14,967 nt of DNA, from assembly GCA_000388065.2 (NCBI GenBank), contig KB932211.1; one strand, given 5' to 3'. Made by a program: the position numbers and the translations under genes. The stretch's first letter is position 1; every line of letters starts with the position of its first letter. The DNA is from Fonticula alba ATCC 38817 (Eukaryota; Protista; Nucleariida). Below are positions 404 to 12,427 of this stretch, one piece after another. A model generated the notes under the pieces. It searched no databases. It was given only the letters and a program-made list of their open reading frames with translations, and was not told the origin of the DNA.

Positions 404-3400
404 TCACAGAATGCGACCGTTGACGTCGGCGGACATGCGGAAGGGCTTGGACGGGTTCATGACATAGGTGTCGATGAAGCTCTGGGCCAAGTCATTCACC
501 TGATCCGAGGGGTAGTGGTGGGTGTACAGGGCCACGCGCTTGGCGAACTCCGGCCGATGGAGGCGACCCGACTCGTTGACCAGCCCCTCGGCGAAGGCCT
601 CCAGGCTCATGACCGGGGCACCGTTGGCCGGGGCGGCGGCGGCGACCTCGGCCGCGGCCTTGTCCGCCTCCTCACGCCGGAAGACACCGGCCAGGCGGGC
701 CACATCCTCGGGCGAGGGCTCCGGCTGGAGACGACGCTCGGTGAGCCGGTGCGCCTCGGCCGGGTCGGTCTCATGGTAGAACTGCAGGCGCTTGGGCCGC
801 GGGGCATTCCGGTTGGGCGGCCGGTAGTTGTCCAGCTCCCGGGTCTTGGACTTGTCACGCGGGGCCAGCAGATGCGGCCTGGGGTCCATGTACGAGCCAT
901 GCTGGCCGATCACCCGGTCGGCCTGGTAGCTGAGCAGCGGCCGCAGGTAGGGGAAGGTCCGGATCAGGTCCGTGTCGACACCGAGCTCCCGATCGAACTT
1001 GGCCAGGGTCCCAGCCTGAGCATGGGCATCGACATTGTAGATGCGCGAGATCAGGTCGTGCGAGCCCTCCTCCAGATCGGTATGGTCGCCGGCGGAAATG
1101 CCACTCGGCTCGAAGGCCCGGCGCTCCTGCTCATTGATCAGCTCATCCTCCAGGACGGACTGGGCCAGGTTCTCCATGTGCGGCGGCAGCTCCAGCCGCC
1201 AGGCACCCTCCACATAGCGGAGCACGGCATTCGGCTTGGCCGGATCCACCGGCAGGCCGGCCATGCGCTCGAGATCCTTCGGCGCCGGGGCCAAGCCCAA
1301 GCGCCAGGTGCCCTCGCCACCGAGGCTGTCCCCGGCCGTGGCCCGATGAAGCAGGCCCAAACGCGACAGGACGTCCAGCGGAGACAGCGACCCGGAGGCG
1401 ACCACATCGCGGTCCAGATTCTCGAAGGCGATGTTGCAGTGGCGCACGGCCAGATCCAGGCGCACGCGCTCCAGCGGGCTGATCGCCAGCGGAGCCGGAG
1501 CCGCACCACGCGTGGGCGGCGGCGTCAGCGACACACCCTCACGCGCCATGATGGACTCCAGCGTGTCATACACGGCGGTACCCGGCCGGGCAGCCGCCGC
1601 CAGGCCCTTGGAGTTATCGGTATTCAGCTTGCCCTGCAGCCACCAGTCCGACCCGTAAACCATGTGCGTGGTTTGCAGGTTCTCCATGCCGATGTTGGGG
1701 TTCAGCAGATCCGGCATGACCCCCTCGCGCATGCGATACTCATCGCGCAGCACGTCGAACAGCTGCCCCGGGCGCGGGGTGGACCCAGCCTCGGTGGCCC
1801 CATCCGGCAGGAGGTTCAGCAGGCTGGCCAGGGTGCTCTCGCCCTGGCGGGCGTCCTGCTGCGTGAAGGATGCCCGCGCGAAGGCCTGCAGCTGGGGATC
1901 CGAGAAGTCCAACTCCCCGAGGATCTTGCGCCGGACCAAATCCGTCATAATGCGAATGAAGTGATCCAGCAGGACCGACTCCGACACGACCGGCGCATCG
2001 GGCGCATCACCGCCGGGCGTAATCGGCAGCAGCTCCTCCAGCGCGGGAACACCCTCATCGGCGGACTCCCCAGCATTGGCATCAGCACCATCGGCCGAGG
2101 CGGCCGACTGGCGCCGGTTGTGCCGGCGGCGCTGGTCAATCAGGGAGTTGGCGTACTCGGAGTTGGCAAGGCGCTCGTCCATCTTGAACTTGGCATACAC
2201 CTCCGGGCCGAGGGCCTTCTCCATGCGAGCCAGGGTGTCGGACAGGTCCACCTGGTCCGGCTTGGCATAGTACCCCATGTAGTGGGTGCAGTACGAGAGG
2301 AAGGCCTGCTCCTGGTGCGGCGCATCGGCCGGGATGCGCGCCATCGCGCGCTCAATTTGCTGGCTGTCCAGCAGCGACCCGGTCAGCGGGGGCAGCTGGT
2401 TGGTGAAGAAGTAGTGCAGCTGGTCCTGCGGGTCGAGCTGGACAAACTCCTCCAGCTGGTTGTACAACGAGCGCAGGGTGATGTCGATGTTGGTGGTGGC
2501 CGGGGTCAGGTCGGCGCAGGTGGCCGCCTCGCGCGCCAGCAACGGGTCACTGAGCACCGCGCCGGTGAAGGCCTTGACCAGCTCCGGCGTCACGCGCGCC
2601 GCATCCAGGTACTGGAAGATGTTCAGCATGACGCGGTACTGCACGTGGGAAATGGTGGGGGCCAGGCGCGTCAGCACCCGCAGGGCCTCCTGGCACCCGA
2701 CCGGCAGCGGGCCATCATGGCGGATGACATCCAGCACCGTGGCGTTGGGGGCCAGACCGCGGCGCAGGGCGGCCTGGCTGATGGGCGTGTTGATGGGAGT
2801 CCCGATGAGGCTGGCCTCCACCGGGAAGAGGTCCGCATACTGGTGGCGATCGGAGGACTGGGCGCCGGTCAGCAGGTGCGGGTTGAGACGCAGGTACTCG
2901 TCGGAAATGCGCATCGGCGAGTTGCTGCCAAGCAGGTACGGGTGCCCGAAGCGCTCCATACTGGCGATGTTGGCGAAGGACTGCGAGAACTCCGGCACAC
3001 GGCGGAAGCGGTTCAGGACCTTGGCCGTGCGGCTGGCCTGGATCACCGAGTCCAGGTAGAACTCCACCAGCGTGTGGGACCGGTCATTGGTGGGGACCGG
3101 GTAGGCGAACTGCTGGGGGTTGACGTCGGAGTTGCAGAAGGCTGGCGGGGGGGGGGGGGGGGNNNNNNNNNNNNNNNNNNNNNNNNNNNNNNNNNNNNNN
3201 NNNNNNNNNNNNNNNNNNNNNNNNNNNNNNNNNNNNNNNNNNNNNNNNNNNNNNNNNNNNNNNNNNNNNGGGGGGCGGAAGGAGAGGGCAGGACGGAGGA
3301 GGCACACATCAGGGGTCAGTCAAGCAGAAAAGGAGGACACCGCGGGGAGGGGGGGTGCCAAAAGAAAAACCAAAAAGGACCGCCGGAGCCACAGCAGCCA

Positions 3401-4451
3401 CGACGACGACAACGCACCAACAACCGGGATGTTCAGCAGACGGCACTCATTGAAGAGAGCCTCCTGGGAGTTGGGGTCGAAGACGACCACCGCATCCGGC
3501 AGGTGGTTGGGGTTCTCCAGGATAATCTGCCGGTTGGTCAGGGTACCGGGAATCCAGCGGTTGACCACGTAATAGAGCCCGGCCTCGCGGCACTTCTTGG
3601 TGATGAGCTCCTGCGGGATGATTCGGCAAGAGCGGGGCAAGGGGCGGTGTCGGGGCAACGGTCAGAGGCGCGCGAGGAGAGGCCAATCAATGGGAGGAGA
3701 GAGGAGGAAGGGGGAGGGGGGGGAGGGACGACGCGACCAGCGGCCCACGCACACGGTACAGCAGGTTGTTGCAGACAACCAGGATCTGGCCATTGAGGCG
3801 GGAAACCTCCTCGATGAAGGACAGAGCGCGGCGCAGATTCAGCAGAGTGTAGTCCAGGTTGAAGATGGTCCGGTTCTTGCGGGTACCCAGCACGTAGGGG
3901 CGGTTGTTGAAGTGCCAGGTGCTGCGCTCAAGGCCGCGGTGGGCCTTCAGCCGGAAGAGCGTGTTCAGGTTGATCAGGTGGTGCGCCGGCGAAGTGCCAA
4001 AGACGTGCATGCCCTTGAACTCGACCGTCCTGCCCTGTGTGCGCGTGTTGCGAGGGGGGATGGGCATGGAGGAGGTGAGCCGAGATGCGAATATGGTTAG
4101 AGTGGGTCGGTCATGCCGGGGGGGGGGGGGTGATAAGAGATACAAGGGAGGAGCAAGAGGGGCAATCAAAGGATTAGCCCAAAAAGATGGCGACGTGGAA
4201 GGGAGAGGGAGAGAAGGAAGATGGCTGGAGACACGCACCTGAGGCGGATTCTTCTTGTGCGAGACCTGGGACCGGGCCTGCTCGGTCACAGAGCCCAGGG
4301 TGAGCGGGACCGGCCGGCGCAGGCCCTTGTTGTTGGGGGAGGCGGTCGCAAAGTTCCGAGAAGACAGGGACGACACAGCGGCCAGCCTCTGAGTGGAGCT
4401 CAGGGGGTTGGTCGCAGGTCGGAGCGCCAGCTTGGAGAAGCTAGGCAGCAT
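404..4451 (-). CDS. MRPS2: Mitochondrial ribosomal protein uS2m with long C-terminal extension; join(complement(4239..4451, 3753..4034, 3418..3610, 404..3141)), 1141 aa
   Basis: Splicing at GT..AG junctions with matching phases (0,0,1) gives a continuous S2-family domain: LFRLKAHRG..WHFNNRPYVLGTRKNRTIFNLDYTLLNLRRAL, YYVVNRWIPGTLTN, LPDAVVVFDP, EALFNECRLLNIPVV|AFCNSDVNPQQFAYPVPTND. The segment between GTLTN and LPD is short, as in animal MRPS2. The N-terminus looks like a mitochondrial presequence. Exon lengths 213+282+193+2738 = 3426 nt. Confidence 0.9.
3142..3417 (-). other. Spliceosomal intron 3 of uS2m gene (contains N gap 3163-3269)
   Basis: Donor GTTG|GTGCGT, ACTGAC branch motif, poly-C tract, acceptor CGCCAG|CC; phase 1 restores IPVV-A-FCNSD. 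Confidence 0.85.
3611..3752 (-). other. Spliceosomal intron 2 of uS2m gene
   Basis: Donor CGT|GTGCGT, CTGAC branch motif, acceptor CCGCAG|GAG; removal joins NNLLYR to ELITKKC within the S2 domain. Confidence 0.85.
4035..4238 (-). other. Spliceosomal intron 1 of uS2m gene
   Basis: Donor CAG|GTGCGT, internal C-rich tract, CTAAC branch-like motif, acceptor ACACAG|GGC; phase 0. Confidence 0.8.
4340..4451 (-). other. Predicted mitochondrial targeting presequence
   Basis: MLPSFSKLALRPATNPLSSTQRLAAVSSLSSRNF-ATAS is rich in S/L/R/A, has no acidic residues, and has an R-x-F|A cleavage-like motif. Confidence 0.75.
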
Positions 4452-6286: not shown

Positions 6287-7220
6287 TCACACCCCGAAGA
6301 CAATGGCCTTGGGAGAGAAGCCAAGACGCCCGACCTGGGAGTTGTGGAAGCCAATGGCCTCCTGCACCAGGTCCTTGTCGGCCAAGTTCAGCCGGTTGAT
6401 GGTCGGGTGGTTGATGCAATCGCGGATGATGGGAACCGCCCGAGTGACGATGATGTTTGAGCCGGTCTGCTGCGCGGGGACCAGCTCATGGACCACATTG
6501 CGCCCGGCCAGGAAGGCGGTGAAGCGCCCGGACGAGAAGACCTCCTGGCCGGCGGTCTTGATGGATGCCGGCTTGAAACGGTGGAACACATGGCTCATGA
6601 GGGCCTTGCGGATGTCACCGAGGGTGGGAGCGTCCGGCACCGGCACGGCGATGATGAACAACGAGAGGATGTCGAACACGATCAGGTGGTTCTGCCCGTG
6701 GCCCGAGGGCTCGGGCACACGGGACAGCCGATGCAGCCCGATGGCCAGGGCATGCATCGGATTGTCCGGCGTCCGGGTGGGGCCCTGTCGGGCCCCGGGC
6801 GAGGCCTGGCGCGCGGCACAATGGCCACACTCGCTGGTGACTTGGCGCACGATCGGCTTAAAGCCCCCCACGATGAAGAACCCGCGCATGATGCGTAGCA
6901 TGACCGCGATGCTGGGATGGTCCATGTGAGCATCGTGGTGCAGGAAGCGCACCAGCCTCTCGGTCCAGGCTGGCGGAATGACAAGTCGGTCGTCCTCCAG
7001 CAGGAACCCATCGACCATGTGGCCGCGGGAGCGCTGTGCATCCGGGATGTCCCTCTGCGCCTGGCGGATGAGAGTGTTTAGATCCAGTTTGCCGCTCGGC
7101 GGGCTGGCGGGGCTCTTGGCATCAAGCGGCGGGCTCTTTGAGCGGGATGATCCCGGAGGCGGGGGCTTTTGGGAGACCGGCGAGGCGAAAACCCGGGGGA
7201 CGCCGCCAGGCCGCTGTTGC

Positions 7221-7294
<74 letters not shown>

Positions 7295-7313
7295 TTGTTG
7301 TTGTTGTTGTTGT

Positions 7314-7344
<31 letters not shown>

Positions 7345-10300
7345 GCGACTGCGACTGCGGCTGCGACTGCGACGCCGCCTGCGACTGCGACTGCGGCTCC
7401 GACTGCGACTGCGGCGGCGACGGCGACTGCGGCTGCGACTGCGACTGCGGCTGCGACTGCTGCCCGTGATTGACACCGCCACGCGGGCCGGGGCAGGGCG
7501 CGGCCTCGGAGCTCGGGTCGACATCCATGTGGGTCGTGCCGAGGGGGGGCCCGTGCGGCGAGGCACACACCTCGGCACTGCCGAGCCCCGGGATGTACAG
7601 CCGGTCGTCCGGTGTCAAGTTCGAGTGCACGGTGGCCGGCATGCCGAGCCCGGTGGCCGGGAGGACCGTCTCCCCGGCACCAGCATCCCCGGGCCCGGCG
7701 AAATGGTGGTCCCCCAGCGGCACACCGACGATCTGGCCGCCGGTGCGCCGGCCACGAGTTGTCTCATCCAGCGTGGCCGCCAGCGACCCGTCCACCTGCC
7801 GGGTGAAGCAAATCCACCGGGGAATGCGCGACAGATAGTCGGCCGCCGGGTTGTCCTGGCCCGGGACGAAGACAATCTTGGCCAGGGGGAACTCCTCCAG
7901 CCGGGCAATCCACCGGGCCTTGCGCAGGCAAATGTACTGCTCCCGGCGCCAGGTGGAGATGGCCATGTTATCGGTGAAGATGGTGATGGGCAGGCCATTT
8001 TGCACATGCGGCGCCCAGTGCTCCAGGGCCATGATGATGCCGAGCATTTCCTTCTCGTGCACCGGGTAGGCCCGGTGCGCCGGCGGCAGGGCCTTGGAAA
8101 AGAATTCGATCGGGAAGCGCTCCAGCCGGTCGGTCCCCGGCACCGGGCGATACTGCAGCAGCACGGCCCCGACACAATCGCCCGACGCATCGGAATAGAT
8201 GTAGTACGGCTGGTCGATGGCCGGCGCGTGGATGGCACACGCGTCGGCAATCAGGTCCCTCACCGCGCGGAAGGCCTGCGTGGCTTGGGCCGTGGCCCGG
8301 AGCTTGCCGGTGGAATTCCCCCGGAGCAGCTGGTACAGCGGCTGGGCCAGGCGCGCATACTCCGGCAGCCAGGCCACCAGGAAGGAGGCATGGCCGAGGA
8401 AGCGCCGGAGCTCCGCCAGGCACCCGGGGAAGACCAATGCCCGGGCCTGCTGCACCCGCTGCTCGGTCAGGTCGATCTTGCCCTGCCCCATGACGAAGCC
8501 CAGGTACTCCACCTGGGCCAGGCCGAAGTGGCACTGGCCGAGGGCCAGCTCCGCATGGTGGGCATTCAGCCGGGACAGGACCTGGTGCACATGCTGGACA
8601 TGGTCGGCCTCCGAGGCGGAAAACACCACGATGTCCTCCATGAAGAAGGAGCAGAACCCCTCGCAAGGCTGGAGGATCTTGCCCAGCTCGGTGGCCAGCA
8701 CGAAGGCCGAGTGCGTCAAGCCGGCCGGCAGGCGCCGGTACCGATAGTACCGGCCCTGGAATTGGAAGACCAGCAACTGCCGCGATGCCTCATCCACCGG
8801 CACATGGTGGACCCCATGGGCCAGCCGCAGGGTGGTGAAGATCCGGCCGCTGGCCGCCCGCTGCAGCGGCGTATGGCCCACGGCCAGCGACATGCGATTC
8901 GGGCTCGGCACCACGGCATTCAAAGCACGAAGGTCCATGCATGGCTGGACCTGGCCACGGGCCGTGCTCACCATGATCAGCGAGGCCGCATGGGGGTCGG
9001 CCACGGTCGGCTCGATGACCCCGGCTGCCAGGACCTCCTGCAGCCAGGCCTCCACCTTGGGCCAGTGCATCACCGGCACCGGGATGTGCTCCGGCAGGTC
9101 GCGCTCCTTGGCCGAGTCCACCGGGATGACAAAGGGCGTCGTGTGGCGGAAGACCGGATACGCCGGCCGCTGGCGGAAGGCCTCCAGCAGCGGCTCCCAC
9201 GAGGGGTCCCGCATGTGGGCCCCGGTCAGCGGCCGCAGGCGTTCCCNNNNNNNNNNNNNNNNNNNNNNNNNNNNNGCGCTCCTTGGCCGAGTCCACCGGG
9301 ATGACAAAGGGCGTCGTGTGGCGGAAGACCGGATACGCCGGCCGCTGGCGGAAGGCCTCCAGCAGCGGCTCCCACGAGGGGTCCCGCATGTGGGCCCCGG
9401 TCAGCGGCCGCAGGCGTTCCATCCGCGGGGCAATGTCGAACTCGTAGTCCAGCGCGTCGTTGCGCCCGCGCGGCAGGAGGTCCTGGCCGCGTGGCTCCAG
9501 CGTGGCCGTGCCCTCCTTGGGCGGCTCATCGGCCGAGGCCAGCAGGTCCACCAGCCCGGGGACCAAATCCGCGAAAACCTCCGCCTCGAGCATGATATAC
9601 TCGTGTGCCACATCCAGCACCAGGGCCCGGACCGTGCGGCTGGCCCCGGATGGCCAGATCGGAAGAGCACACGCAGGTCCACCAGCCCGGGGACCAAATC
9701 CGCGAAAACCTCCGCCTCGAGCATGATATACTCGTGTGCCACATCCAGCACCAGGGCCCGGACCGTGCGGCTGGCCCCGGATGGCCGGTACACCGCGAAG
9801 GCGCACACATGCGTGGCATTGGACATGCGGCCGTCCAGGCCGCGGAAGCGTGTCAGCTGGCGCTCCAGCTGCAGCCCAAACCGGGCCACCATCCAGTACG
9901 GGATGACCGACACATCGGCCCCGGAATTGAACTTCATCCACACATTCCCATGGAAGGAGGTCCGGCGCCGGACCAGAAACCGCCCGCCCGAGGGGTGCGG
10001 GCTGGGATCCCCGCGCGCCGGGCCGGCCCCGGGCATGGACGAGGGGGGCATCTGCCCGCCGGGGGTGGGCCCGGGCCGGGGCCGCGGGGCATCGGCCGAA
10101 GGCCCCTCCTCCAGGCACATGTCCCCGTCCGGCGTCGTGGTGGTGGCGGGCCCGCCCACCGGCGGGCTGGCGGCGGGCGGCGAGTCCGGGGACGGCCAAT
10201 CGCTCGAGGCCGCCGCGAAGGGGCCCCCACCATCCGGCATCGGGTCGAACCCCTCGCTGGACATCGGCCCCAGGCCGCCGGCGGTGGGGTCGTCCCCGGC

Positions 10301-12127
10301 CATGGGCACGGCGTGCGGCCCCGCGCCGGCCGTCGGGCTGACCGGGCTCGAGTGCCGGCGGGCGTTTGCCCGGAAGCGGACCCGGCTATGGCCGTGGCCC
10401 CCGGCGGCATGGTACCCCGGGCGGTGGTGGTGGTGGTGGTGGTGCTGCTGCTGCTGCTGCGATCGGCCCTCGAGCGAGGTCCCCTCGTGGAAGCGCTTCT
10501 GCATGGGTAGCGGGTCGTGCTCGGGGCCGAGACCAAGGATCACCTCCTCCAGCACCCCGAACACCCCCTTGCAGGGGGAGTACTCGTACAGGTCGCGGAA
10601 GTGGGCCAGCAGCGCGGCATCCCGCCGGGGGGGCGGCATGCTGCCCAGGAGAAGCCCCTGCAGGGGGGAGCTGGCCGTGGCCGTGGCCGTGGCCGACGAT
10701 GGCAGCGCCGGCGGCGCCGGCGGCGGCCCGGCCAGATTCAGGCCGACCAGCGCCTCGAAGGCGGCCCGCGACTCATTGCCCAGGGCGAGGAGAATGCGCT
10801 CGGCAATTTGCTCCGGCGACATGCGCAGGCCGGCACTGGCGGCGATCCACCCGGCCAGGTGCAGCAATTGCGCCTCGGTGGTGGTGAGCGGCGCGAAGAG
10901 GATGAACGTGGCGCTGAAGATGTCCGCGTCCTGGGGCTCCACCAGGACGGCCAGATGCCCGGCCAGGGACATGGCCGCCTCCATGCTGAGGAAGGGGTTG
11001 ATGCTTGCCCGGGTGATGGTTTGGAGGATGGGCGCCACGCGGGCCGTGTATTCCATCCGCCGCGCGCCGCTGATGAGCGCATGGCGCAGGATGAAGTGCC
11101 GGTGGGGGCGCCACCGGCCGTCGATGTGCTCCAGCCCCGGGACACTGTAGATGGGGCCCAGACGCGCGTCCCACGCGCGCGACGGGGCCAGCGCCAGGTA
11201 CAGCTTGGCCGCCGAGTCCGGGGTCAGGGCCAGCCAGTTGAGCCGGCCATCGCCCGACGGGTGGGCCAGGATCATGGCCACCTCCTCCGGGCTGGTCGGC
11301 CGGCTGGTCGGGGTCGAGGTGAAGGGCCCGGCCGGCGGGGCATCCGCCGGGGGGGTGGCCAGGGCCTCGGCCGGCGGCCCGGCGCCCGCGTCCCCCGGCC
11401 CCGGGCCCAAGTTCAGCCGGTCGAAGGCACCCCGGAAGTCGGCGTCCCGAAGCAGGAGGAGGACCTCCCGCGGGGGGTGTCGCCCCCGGCGAAGGGCCTG
11501 CGACACCGGGCCGTACCCCACCTCCGGGTGGCGCTCGGCCATCAGCAGGGCCACCCGGTGGCGGTCTTGCGCCTCGCCATGGAAGCGCGCCACATGCTGG
11601 GCCATGCCGGCACGGGCCTCGGCCGTCAGCAGCCTCGGCAGCCAGAGGGCAATCTGTGCCGGGTCCACCGCCGCCAGGGAGGGCGGATGGCCGCCGGGCC
11701 CGGCCGACGGGGAGGCATTGACCATGGTGTCCAGCGGGGCCAGGGCCGCCTGCAGGTCGGGCCAAGCCTCGGCCAGGGCCAGGTAGCCCTCGACAAAGAG
11801 CCGGCTCGTCAGCAGGGGGTTGTGCGGGTTTTCGGCGACCATGATGCCGAGGAAGACGTGCGCGTCGAGGGCCAGCCCGAGGGCCGGCTCGGACGCCAGC
11901 CACCCCTCGACCAGGGCCTCGCGTGAGGTCGGCACCCCGGCGGCCAGGGCCAGCAGCCGGGCCAGCATATCGCACGCCGTGTCCAATGCCGGGTACTCGA
12001 AGTGGGCCGCGCCCACATGGAAAGGCAGCCCGGCGATCTGGATGACCATGTTCTCGCTGGCATGGAGCTGCCCCGGGGCCGGGCCGGCGCCGGCCGGCGG
12101 GGCGCCGCCATCCGGCAAGTCGCTCAT
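6287..12127 (-). CDS. Ty3/gypsy-derived polyprotein (N-terminal region-PR*-RT*-RNase H-polyQ-IN*), probably a domesticated host gene; 1844 aa after removing assembly duplications 9542-9672 and 9246-9420
   Basis: ORFs 9401..12127, 8790..10199 and 6287..9307 join into one frame when the two duplicated blocks (131+175 nt) are collapsed. Domain order PR-RT-RH-IN is that of Ty3/gypsy (Metaviridae). Codons are GC3-rich like the neighbouring uS2m gene. Confidence 0.85.
6290..6945 (-). other. Integrase domain: HHCC zinc finger intact, DDE triad lost
   Basis: HHDAHMDH-X29-CGHC; the core retains HLIVFDILS, EVFSSGRFTAFL, GSNIIVTRAV, FHNSQ and GFSPKAIVFG, but has G/A/T at the D/D/E positions. Confidence 0.85.
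7223..7462 (-). repeat. Coding trinucleotide/hexanucleotide repeat: (QS/QP)n followed by Q31
   Basis: Minus strand has (CAA)8(CAG)23 at 7223-7315, preceded by CAGTCG/CAGCCG hexamers at about 7316-7462, all in frame in the RH-IN linker. Confidence 0.95.
7820..8210 (-). other. Ty3/gypsy RNase H domain with intact acidic residues
   Basis: YIYSDASGDCVGAVLLQ, PIEFFSKAL, YPVHEKEMLGII, ITIFTDN, RWIARLEEF, GQDNPAADYLSR. Confidence 0.92.
8230..9060 (-). other. LTR-retrotransposon reverse transcriptase domain, degenerate active site
   Basis: EVLAAGVIEP, CMDLRALN, FTTLRLAHGVHHVPV, RLPAGLTHS, FFMEDIVVFS, CHFGLAQVEYLGF and ELRRFLG align colinearly with the RT_LTR consensus. Confidence 0.92.
9101..9420. 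repeat. Exact 145-bp duplication flanking an N gap (9101-9245 / 9276-9420), uncollapsed contig overlap
   Basis: Identical copies lie on either side of 29 Ns (9247-9275); collapsing them restores the reading frame. Confidence 0.92.
9542..9786. repeat. Exact 114-bp duplication (9542-9655 / 9673-9786), assembly artefact
   Basis: Identical copies separated only by adapter sequence. Confidence 0.93.
9656..9673 (+). other. Illumina TruSeq adapter read-through (assembly artefact)
   Basis: AGATCGGAAGAGCACACG is the start of the standard Illumina adapter. It lies exactly between two identical 114-bp copies. Confidence 0.97.
9690..9945 (-). other. Retropepsin-like aspartic protease domain, catalytic Asp replaced by Asn
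   Basis: VWMKFNSGADVSVIP matches the hhhD(S/T)GA motif with N at 9926-9928. Flap-like FRGLDG is present; the hhG motif reads IMLE. Confidence 0.75.
10424..10460 (-). repeat. Coding Q5H7 tract
   Basis: (CAG)5(CAC)7 in frame in ORF 9401..12127. Confidence 0.9.
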
Positions 12128-12427
12128 CTTGCTGCGCGGCGTCAGCGGCGGCCGGGCAGGAGGGGGAGAAAGGAGGGGAGGGGGGGGGGATGCCGGGGAA
12201 GGCAGGAGTTCCTGCCCCTGTGGCGCGTCGTGGCTTGGATGTGTCTGGGCGGGAGGAGATCGGGCGAAGTTGGTTGGTTGGGGGGATCTCCCTCGCGGGA
12301 GGGGGGGGGGGTGCCGAGCAACTCGCGTGCCCTTGTAGTCGCCGGTCTTGTTTGCGTTGGCAGATCAGCGAGGGGCATGGGGCCGATCCGCGACTGGTCC
12401 CCTCGGCCTCCTCCCCCTGGCGGATGC

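Follow-up and report, generated by a model that had tools for sequence, protein, structure and literature searches.

A probable host-retained Ty3/gypsy Gag-Pol gene in Fonticula alba with substituted protease, polymerase and integrase active sites

How can a retrotransposon-derived polyprotein lose the active sites of three of its enzymes and still be encoded by a frame without a single internal stop? This question is raised by a stretch of 14,967 nucleotides of contig KB932211.1 from the holomycotan amoeba Fonticula alba ATCC 38817 (assembly GCA_000388065.2), hereafter the window. Its minus strand carries a frame derived from a whole Ty3/gypsy-type Gag-Pol polyprotein (6287–12127; 1844 codons plus stop after two artefactual duplications are taken out), in which catalytic residues of the protease (PR), reverse transcriptase (RT) and integrase (IN) are substituted while the four acids of the RNase H are all present. 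The gene is single-copy, appears immobile and has kept its frame open despite the loss of transposition functions, the state expected of a domesticated gene. We regard it as probably a host-retained (exapted) gene that came from a Ty3/gypsy-type retrotransposon of F. alba with a single open reading frame (ORF).

Reading frame, domains and active sites

The public genome presents the gene in pieces. Before clean-up, the locus holds two long same-frame ORFs on the minus strand, 9401–12127 and 6287–9307, and two exact direct repeats. The first (9101–9245 = 9276–9420, spacing 175) spans an N gap, and the second (9542–9655 = 9673–9786, spacing 131) is a 114-nt duplication whose copies are separated by 17 nt (9656–9672) reading AGATCGGAAGAGCACAC. 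We take them for the first letters of the Illumina TruSeq adapter, and adapter read-through was therefore assembled into the contig. The extra sequence thus amounts to 9246–9420, consisting of the N gap (9247–9275) and the second copy of 9101–9245, and to 9656–9786, consisting of the adapter and the second copy of 9542–9655. Contigs from two other samples lack it: one from X3 joins 8211–9100 straight to 9276–9655, skipping 175 nt, with a loose end that matches 9787 onward, and one from X2 joins 9358–9541 straight to 9673–9900, skipping 131 nt. Because these contigs skip them, both duplications are assembly artefacts in the public genome, and they break the gene model at this locus. Taking out the 306 nt (175 + 131) leaves 1844 codons with zero internal stops, which is the sequence seen in other samples and not the mending of a biological break. 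In each of the five remaining frames of this DNA there are 7 to 48 stops.

The comparison with other samples covers 7500–12174, upstream of the stretch with the IN and the CAG repeat (6287–7499). The gene is present in a soil metagenome (X2) and in four DNA runs whose label names another organism (X3, X5, X6 and X9). In the two samples compared, X2 and X3, the sequence is ~99.9% identical to the window, with six single-letter differences over 7680–12174, and the strain itself, or one very close to it, therefore occurs in other samples. One X3 contig is 3 letters shorter within 9932–10741, in frame, and probably differs in length by one codon of the CAG/CAC (Q/H) repeat at 10416–10460. An apparent joint (10728>12142) and a G insertion after 11336 in X11, a run from the source organism, were rejected as short low-complexity matches from other loci.

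The domain order along the frame is Gag-like, PR, RT, RNase H and IN, and the frame combines RT_RNaseH with Integrase_H2C2, as gypsy-type elements do. Pfam recognises RVT_1 (5e-14) and RT_RNaseH (5e-19) and, weakly, Integrase_H2C2 (0.006) and Asp_protease_2; rve has no Pfam match in the frame. The RT of Ty3 (4OL8) matches it at 4e-37. All parts lie on the minus strand. The N-terminal Gag-like region (aa 1–470; 10718–12127) is predicted to be all-helical, in two blocks, and belongs to no Pfam family. It is followed by low-complexity linker 1 (aa 471–720; 9968–10717), which contains a Q/H run and is rich in P, G and A, and by the upstream part of the retropepsin-like protease (9787–9967), a domain that continues across the second artefact. 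The RT domain occupies 8297–9244 and the RNase H domain 7787–8296. An SQ/PQ repeat has been inserted in linker 2 (7022–7786), which also carries a long poly-Q (CAG/CAA) tract; both are lacking from the two paralogues described below. The IN HHCC zinc domain and catalytic-core fold (6290–7021) complete the frame.

Aligned with two motif-intact paralogues, up to 136 other homologues and the Ty3 RT, the frame has lost its catalytic residues in three enzymes. The PR motif DTG has become NSG (D734N; codon 9926–9928), RT motif A carries D999R, and YVDD in RT motif C reads FMED (Y1060F and D1062E; D1063, the second Asp, is retained). All three members of the IN triad are replaced (D1695G, D1757A and E1793T). 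Four further family-conserved RT residues are lost in this gene alone (K953T, R959Q, F1033A and K1096Q), and by homology with HIV-1 RT they are read as catalytic positions or positions that bind deoxynucleoside triphosphates (dNTPs). On the same homology, when the columns strongly conserved in the family are considered, most of the losses unique to the gene hit catalytic or dNTP-binding residues of the polymerase. In contrast, the RNase H retains D1211, E1258, D1284 and D1328, all aligned with the family and with Ty3, and the IN retains its zinc ligands H1628, H1635, C1665 and C1668. Non-catalytic conserved columns of the RT fare much as in the closest paralogue, with 61 of the 105 columns of conservation ≥0.7 retained by the gene versus 64 of 105 by the paralogue. 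Editing and hypermutation of the kind caused by repeat-induced point mutation were rejected as causes of the dead sites, because the replaced codons share no single mutation type and several need two to three nucleotide steps. Replacements of two to three steps also suggest that a long time has passed since those sites lost constraint.

The IN part is truncated. The frame ends ~130 aa before the end of the paralogues, the IN C-terminal domain is absent, and no remnant of it was found downstream of the stop. An AlphaFold model of the IN part, built from a 36-row alignment, reached a mean confidence (pLDDT) of 79.8 and matches foamy-virus, HIV and Ty3 integrases with E values down to 5e-14; its TM-scores against catalytic-core chains, normalised by target length, are ~0.65–0.79. 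The model is compatible with an integrase fold and falls short of proof, because it leans on the alignment. These results bear out what the initial annotation had read from the letters: two assembly duplications interrupting a stop-free frame of 1844 codons (now backed by the adapter and by the X2 and X3 contigs), a PR-RT-RNase H-IN series in Ty3/gypsy order (backed by Pfam, the Ty3 RT match and the paralogue alignment), six substituted catalytic residues (D to N in PR; D to R and FMED in RT; G, A and T in IN), and the persistence of the D-E-D-D acids of the RNase H and of the HHCC ligands in IN.

Copy number and relatives in the genome

The gene is unique in its genome. Besides the artefactual copy there is a single locus of 100% identity, and the next best match is only 47% identical. 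The latter is the paralogue C14, with 47% identity over RT-RNase H; a second paralogue, C42, reaches 34%. In the maximum-likelihood (ML) tree of RT-RNase H, the gene is sister to C14 with support of 100/100. Both paralogues have long open frames, share the domain order of the gene and have an N-terminal region homologous to its own. They differ from the gene in keeping DTG, YVDD, the DDE triad and the IN C-terminal domain, alongside the RNase H acids and HHCC that all three share, and in a lower GC content at third codon positions (GC3; 0.65 in C14 and 0.72 in C42). The N-terminal region has homologues only in C14-family elements of this genome: it gave no usable match in the ESM Atlas and zero homologues in a search of 5.8 billion proteins, the C14 paralogue as query included. 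An AlphaFold model of it from a 2-row alignment is unusable (pLDDT 36), and for that reason the label 'capsid-like' stays unproven for this domain.

No long terminal repeats (LTRs) flank the gene: no direct repeat is shared by both flanks beyond simple sequence, and a comparison with the flanks of its relatives turned up nothing beyond a weak match of 33 nt (85% identity, E 0.002). The initial annotation had expected a single copy and held that many near-identical LTR-flanked copies would speak against a host gene; what we found is one locus and no LTRs. As judged from its sequence, the gene is unable to transpose by itself, because it has no LTRs, its PR, polymerase and IN active sites are destroyed and its IN C-terminal domain is gone. 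Contig C42, in its whole 6.5 kb, corresponds approximately to one full-length gypsy-type element with every catalytic motif present. Its last 94 nt (6409–6502), after the frame, recur at 98–100% identity at at least 6 other sites of the genome and are most likely its LTR edge. This recurrence across the genome means that real elements do leave LTRs here, and the scattered edges of C42 type set that family apart from the gene.

The genome is poor in transposable elements (TEs), with repeats reported at 0.36% of it (bioRxiv 10.64898/2026.06.24.734286). Other gypsy-like fragments have 1–8 stops and a GC3 of 0.62–0.78. Two open frames on contig C10 are of a different kind. The first (C10:472177–474681, minus strand; 834 aa) is a C14-family copy with ~90% DNA identity to C14, from which an internal deletion has removed the middle, so that the Gag-like region runs straight into the integrase core; this copy differs from C14 by 194 AT>GC versus 48 GC>AT changes, mostly at third codon positions. 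The second (C10:42431–46093, plus strand; 1220 aa, GC3 0.76) has a different N-terminal region fused directly to an integrase with HHCC, a D,D,K triad in which the Glu is replaced and an SH3-like C-terminus, and is without PR-RT-RNase H. This frame could represent a further gene descended from an element, or else a deletion derivative. Next to the gene in the window, just downstream, an ORF at 3687–4451 (minus strand) has a Ribosomal_S2 match (6e-10), and next on the same strand after it is a 967-aa ORF of no family (404–3307); this arrangement fits a uS2m with a long extension.

Constraint or decay

The most serious rival explanation is that the gene is a neutral relic, an old dead copy whose frame stayed open by luck because stops are rare in GC-rich DNA. 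Such DNA does yield chance ORFs in the other frames here, up to 772 aa in length, and yet the same frames contain the 7–48 stops noted above and other gypsy-like fragments of the same genome did gain stops. Under a neutral model, the joint probability that 6 or more of the 11 canonical acids disappear and no stop arises is at best 5e-6, at an equilibrium GC of 0.65, or 7e-4, at an equilibrium GC of 0.89, where the relic fares least badly. The model starts from this sequence and contains substitutions only; it ignores indels, which favours neutrality. Long neutral decay is thus very unlikely, in keeping with the initial annotation, which held that a decaying element gains stops and frameshifts far faster than it loses six particular catalytic residues. 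The composition of the frame also argues against a relic: GC at the three codon positions is 0.72/0.50/0.89, with strong codon periodicity in every domain, against 0.64–0.66 in the flanking non-coding DNA.

The pattern of losses points in the same direction, as they cluster at active-site residues and are not scattered across conserved columns. The probability of keeping four of four RNase H acids while six of the seven other canonical acids are lost is 0.015. Relative rates were estimated from changes unique to the gene or to C14, with C42 as the outgroup. The gene has fewer unique changes than C14 in the N-terminus (41 versus 65, p 0.025) and an equal number in the RNase H (13 versus 13, p 1.0), so neither shows the acceleration that a relic should. 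In the three dead enzymes it has more, both separately (PR 18 versus 9, p 0.12; RT 49 versus 29, p 0.03; IN 36 versus 23, p 0.12) and in sum (103 versus 61, p 0.0013). These rates fit ongoing constraint, which is strong on the RNase H and the N-terminal domain and has slackened in PR, RT and IN.

Several observations weigh against retention by the host. PR, RT and IN evolve ~1.7 times faster than in the motif-intact sister element, which a relic would also explain. The claim of the initial annotation that long-term selection keeps the whole Pol scaffold is partly supported, the signs of constraint being clearest in the RNase H and the N-terminus. The ML branch of the gene is also longer (0.87 versus 0.48 for C14), and part of this excess may come from the GC-driven amino-acid make-up that the tree tool flagged. 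The six strain differences are four synonymous and two non-synonymous, the latter both in the disordered linker 1; tested against all changes they give p = 0.04, and against a transitions-only expectation, with n = 6, they are not significant (p = 0.11). High GC3 is not proof of domestication, because host GC3 spans 0.73–0.94 in the few host ORFs sampled and the C14-family deletion copy shows the AT>GC shift at third positions. The Gag-like region is ~25% identical to that of the nearest motif-intact element, and co-assembly with present-day elements is therefore doubtful.

Orthologues and expression add to these points. No orthologue was found, the best relative among 1.84 billion cluster representatives being 34% identical; a fragment-sized search and an exact-protein look-up gave no match, and no JGI metagenome locus exceeded ~30% identity over long matches. 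Expression would be low and the evidence for it is weak, coming from X11 contigs of low depth. In this run, whose RNA status is guessed, perfect contigs at 7783–8186, 8512–8668 and 9078–9245, within the RT and RNase H regions, have depth 3–5, and unrelated contigs have depth 17–60; the 11.4 million contig letters of X11 would suit a transcriptome better than a genome of 31 Mb. The missing orthologue and the unproven expression also speak for a neutral relic. Weighed against the improbability of its open frame, the unaccelerated RNase H and N-terminus and the clustering of its losses, we consider the relic unlikely.

Possible function and known relatives

If the gene is retained by the host, its product would stay one large polyprotein without processing, given its dead protease. 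The RT and integrase folds, though inactive, could serve as nucleic-acid-binding scaffolds, and the RNase H, the sole catalytic centre that appears to remain, may cut the RNA strand of RNA:DNA hybrids. The RT-RNase H of Ty3 is known to bind such a hybrid (4OL8). A hybrid-binding scaffold with the RNase H as its only enzyme would be the simplest model, since the PR is dead, the non-catalytic RT columns are retained and the Ty3 counterpart binds the hybrid. The most plausible targets would be reverse-transcription intermediates of the motif-intact related LTR elements in the same genome, which would amount to restriction or copy-number control; R-loops are an alternative. The conserved Gag-like N-terminus could direct the protein to such particles or RNAs. 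That a protist keeps a whole Gag-Pol as a host gene, with PR, polymerase and IN as inert binding modules and the RNase H as a live hybrid nuclease that restricts its own LTR retrotransposons or clears R-loops, is a tentative proposal, possible but doubtful in this full form. If true, such whole-Pol domestication would be of a kind not previously described.

The gene could also be exapted for something other than its RNase H. Its protein might act solely as a scaffold, or as a trans-dominant subunit that poisons multimers of Gag, PR, RT or IN; or the N-terminal domain alone might matter. Retroviral protease, RT and integrase act as multimers, and dead subunits can poison them. The N-terminal domain is also the slowest part of the protein relative to the sister element. 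On the other hand, the RNase H has lost none of its four acids although the trend is towards loss, it is not accelerated, and co-assembly is made less likely by how little the Gag-like region resembles that of present-day elements (~25% identity). We judge a role without RNase H to be rather unlikely. Least of all do we favour a non-autonomous retrotransposon under element-level selection, moved in trans, with LTRs missed or lost in the short-read assembly: motif-intact relatives and an internal-deletion derivative are present in the genome and the assembly is imperfect at the locus, but this reading is highly improbable. The gene is a single copy, its flanks are unbroken unique sequence in which no LTR-like repeat is seen (the weak 33-nt match to a relative's flank apart), its nearest possible helper shares 47% identity over RT-RNase H and ~25% over the Gag-like region, and its sequence is the same at ~99.9% in X2 and X3, hence with no young copies visible.

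Read as an exapted gene with a candidate live RNase H, the locus is best compared with RTL1/PEG11, a mammalian gene derived from Metaviridae. Both are single-copy, LTR-less genes from a gypsy-type Gag-Pol, with an N-terminal region (capsid-side in RTL1, Gag-like here), PR, RT and RNase H. RTL1 keeps PR together with RT and RNase H domains that are likely inactive but structurally conserved (PMC11011659). For this reason, the premise of the initial annotation that domesticated gypsy genes usually keep only part of Gag-Pol was too strong, and it overstated the novelty of the locus. What sets the locus apart from RTL1 is the retention of the IN zinc domain and core, as RTL1 has no integrase, the four intact RNase H acids, and the host, a holomycotan amoeba. 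The Fonticula gene further differs in its NSG protease site and in having no known orthologues. PEG10, the other SIRH/RTL and PNMA genes and Arc are likewise gypsy-derived host genes under selection; they retain Gag/capsid, sometimes PR, and not a whole Pol (PMC11011659). For the N-terminal region of the Fonticula gene, by comparison, no capsid likeness could be demonstrated.

Other element-derived genes keep smaller parts. GIN1, NYNRIN and CGIN1 are vertebrate genes in which just an IN or an RNase H portion survives, joined to domains of the host. They share with the Fonticula gene the recruitment of Pol-derived domains by the host and differ from it in that the latter keeps a complete collinear Gag-like-PR-RT-RNase H-IN frame. 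The restriction factors Fv1 and Ty1 p22, which controls copy number, are derived from Gag and consist of Gag fragments only; the Fonticula protein may be functionally analogous to them, as an element-derived protein that inhibits related elements. In the literature we found neither this gene nor whole-Pol domestication in protists described. The S. osmophilus genome paper was considered as a precedent and rejected, as it concerns DNA transposases only.

Even if the gene is not maintained, it is a warning that GC-rich genomes harbour long open relics. If selection does maintain it, domestication can reach beyond Gag, protease or integrase pieces to an entire retroelement polyprotein, kept as a string of pseudoenzymes with a single live nuclease among them. 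The example would also come from outside the animals, from a relative of fungi with few TEs. With working-looking sister elements alongside, the gene would offer a compact system for the re-use of dead RT and integrase folds and for an RNase H turned on the elements themselves.

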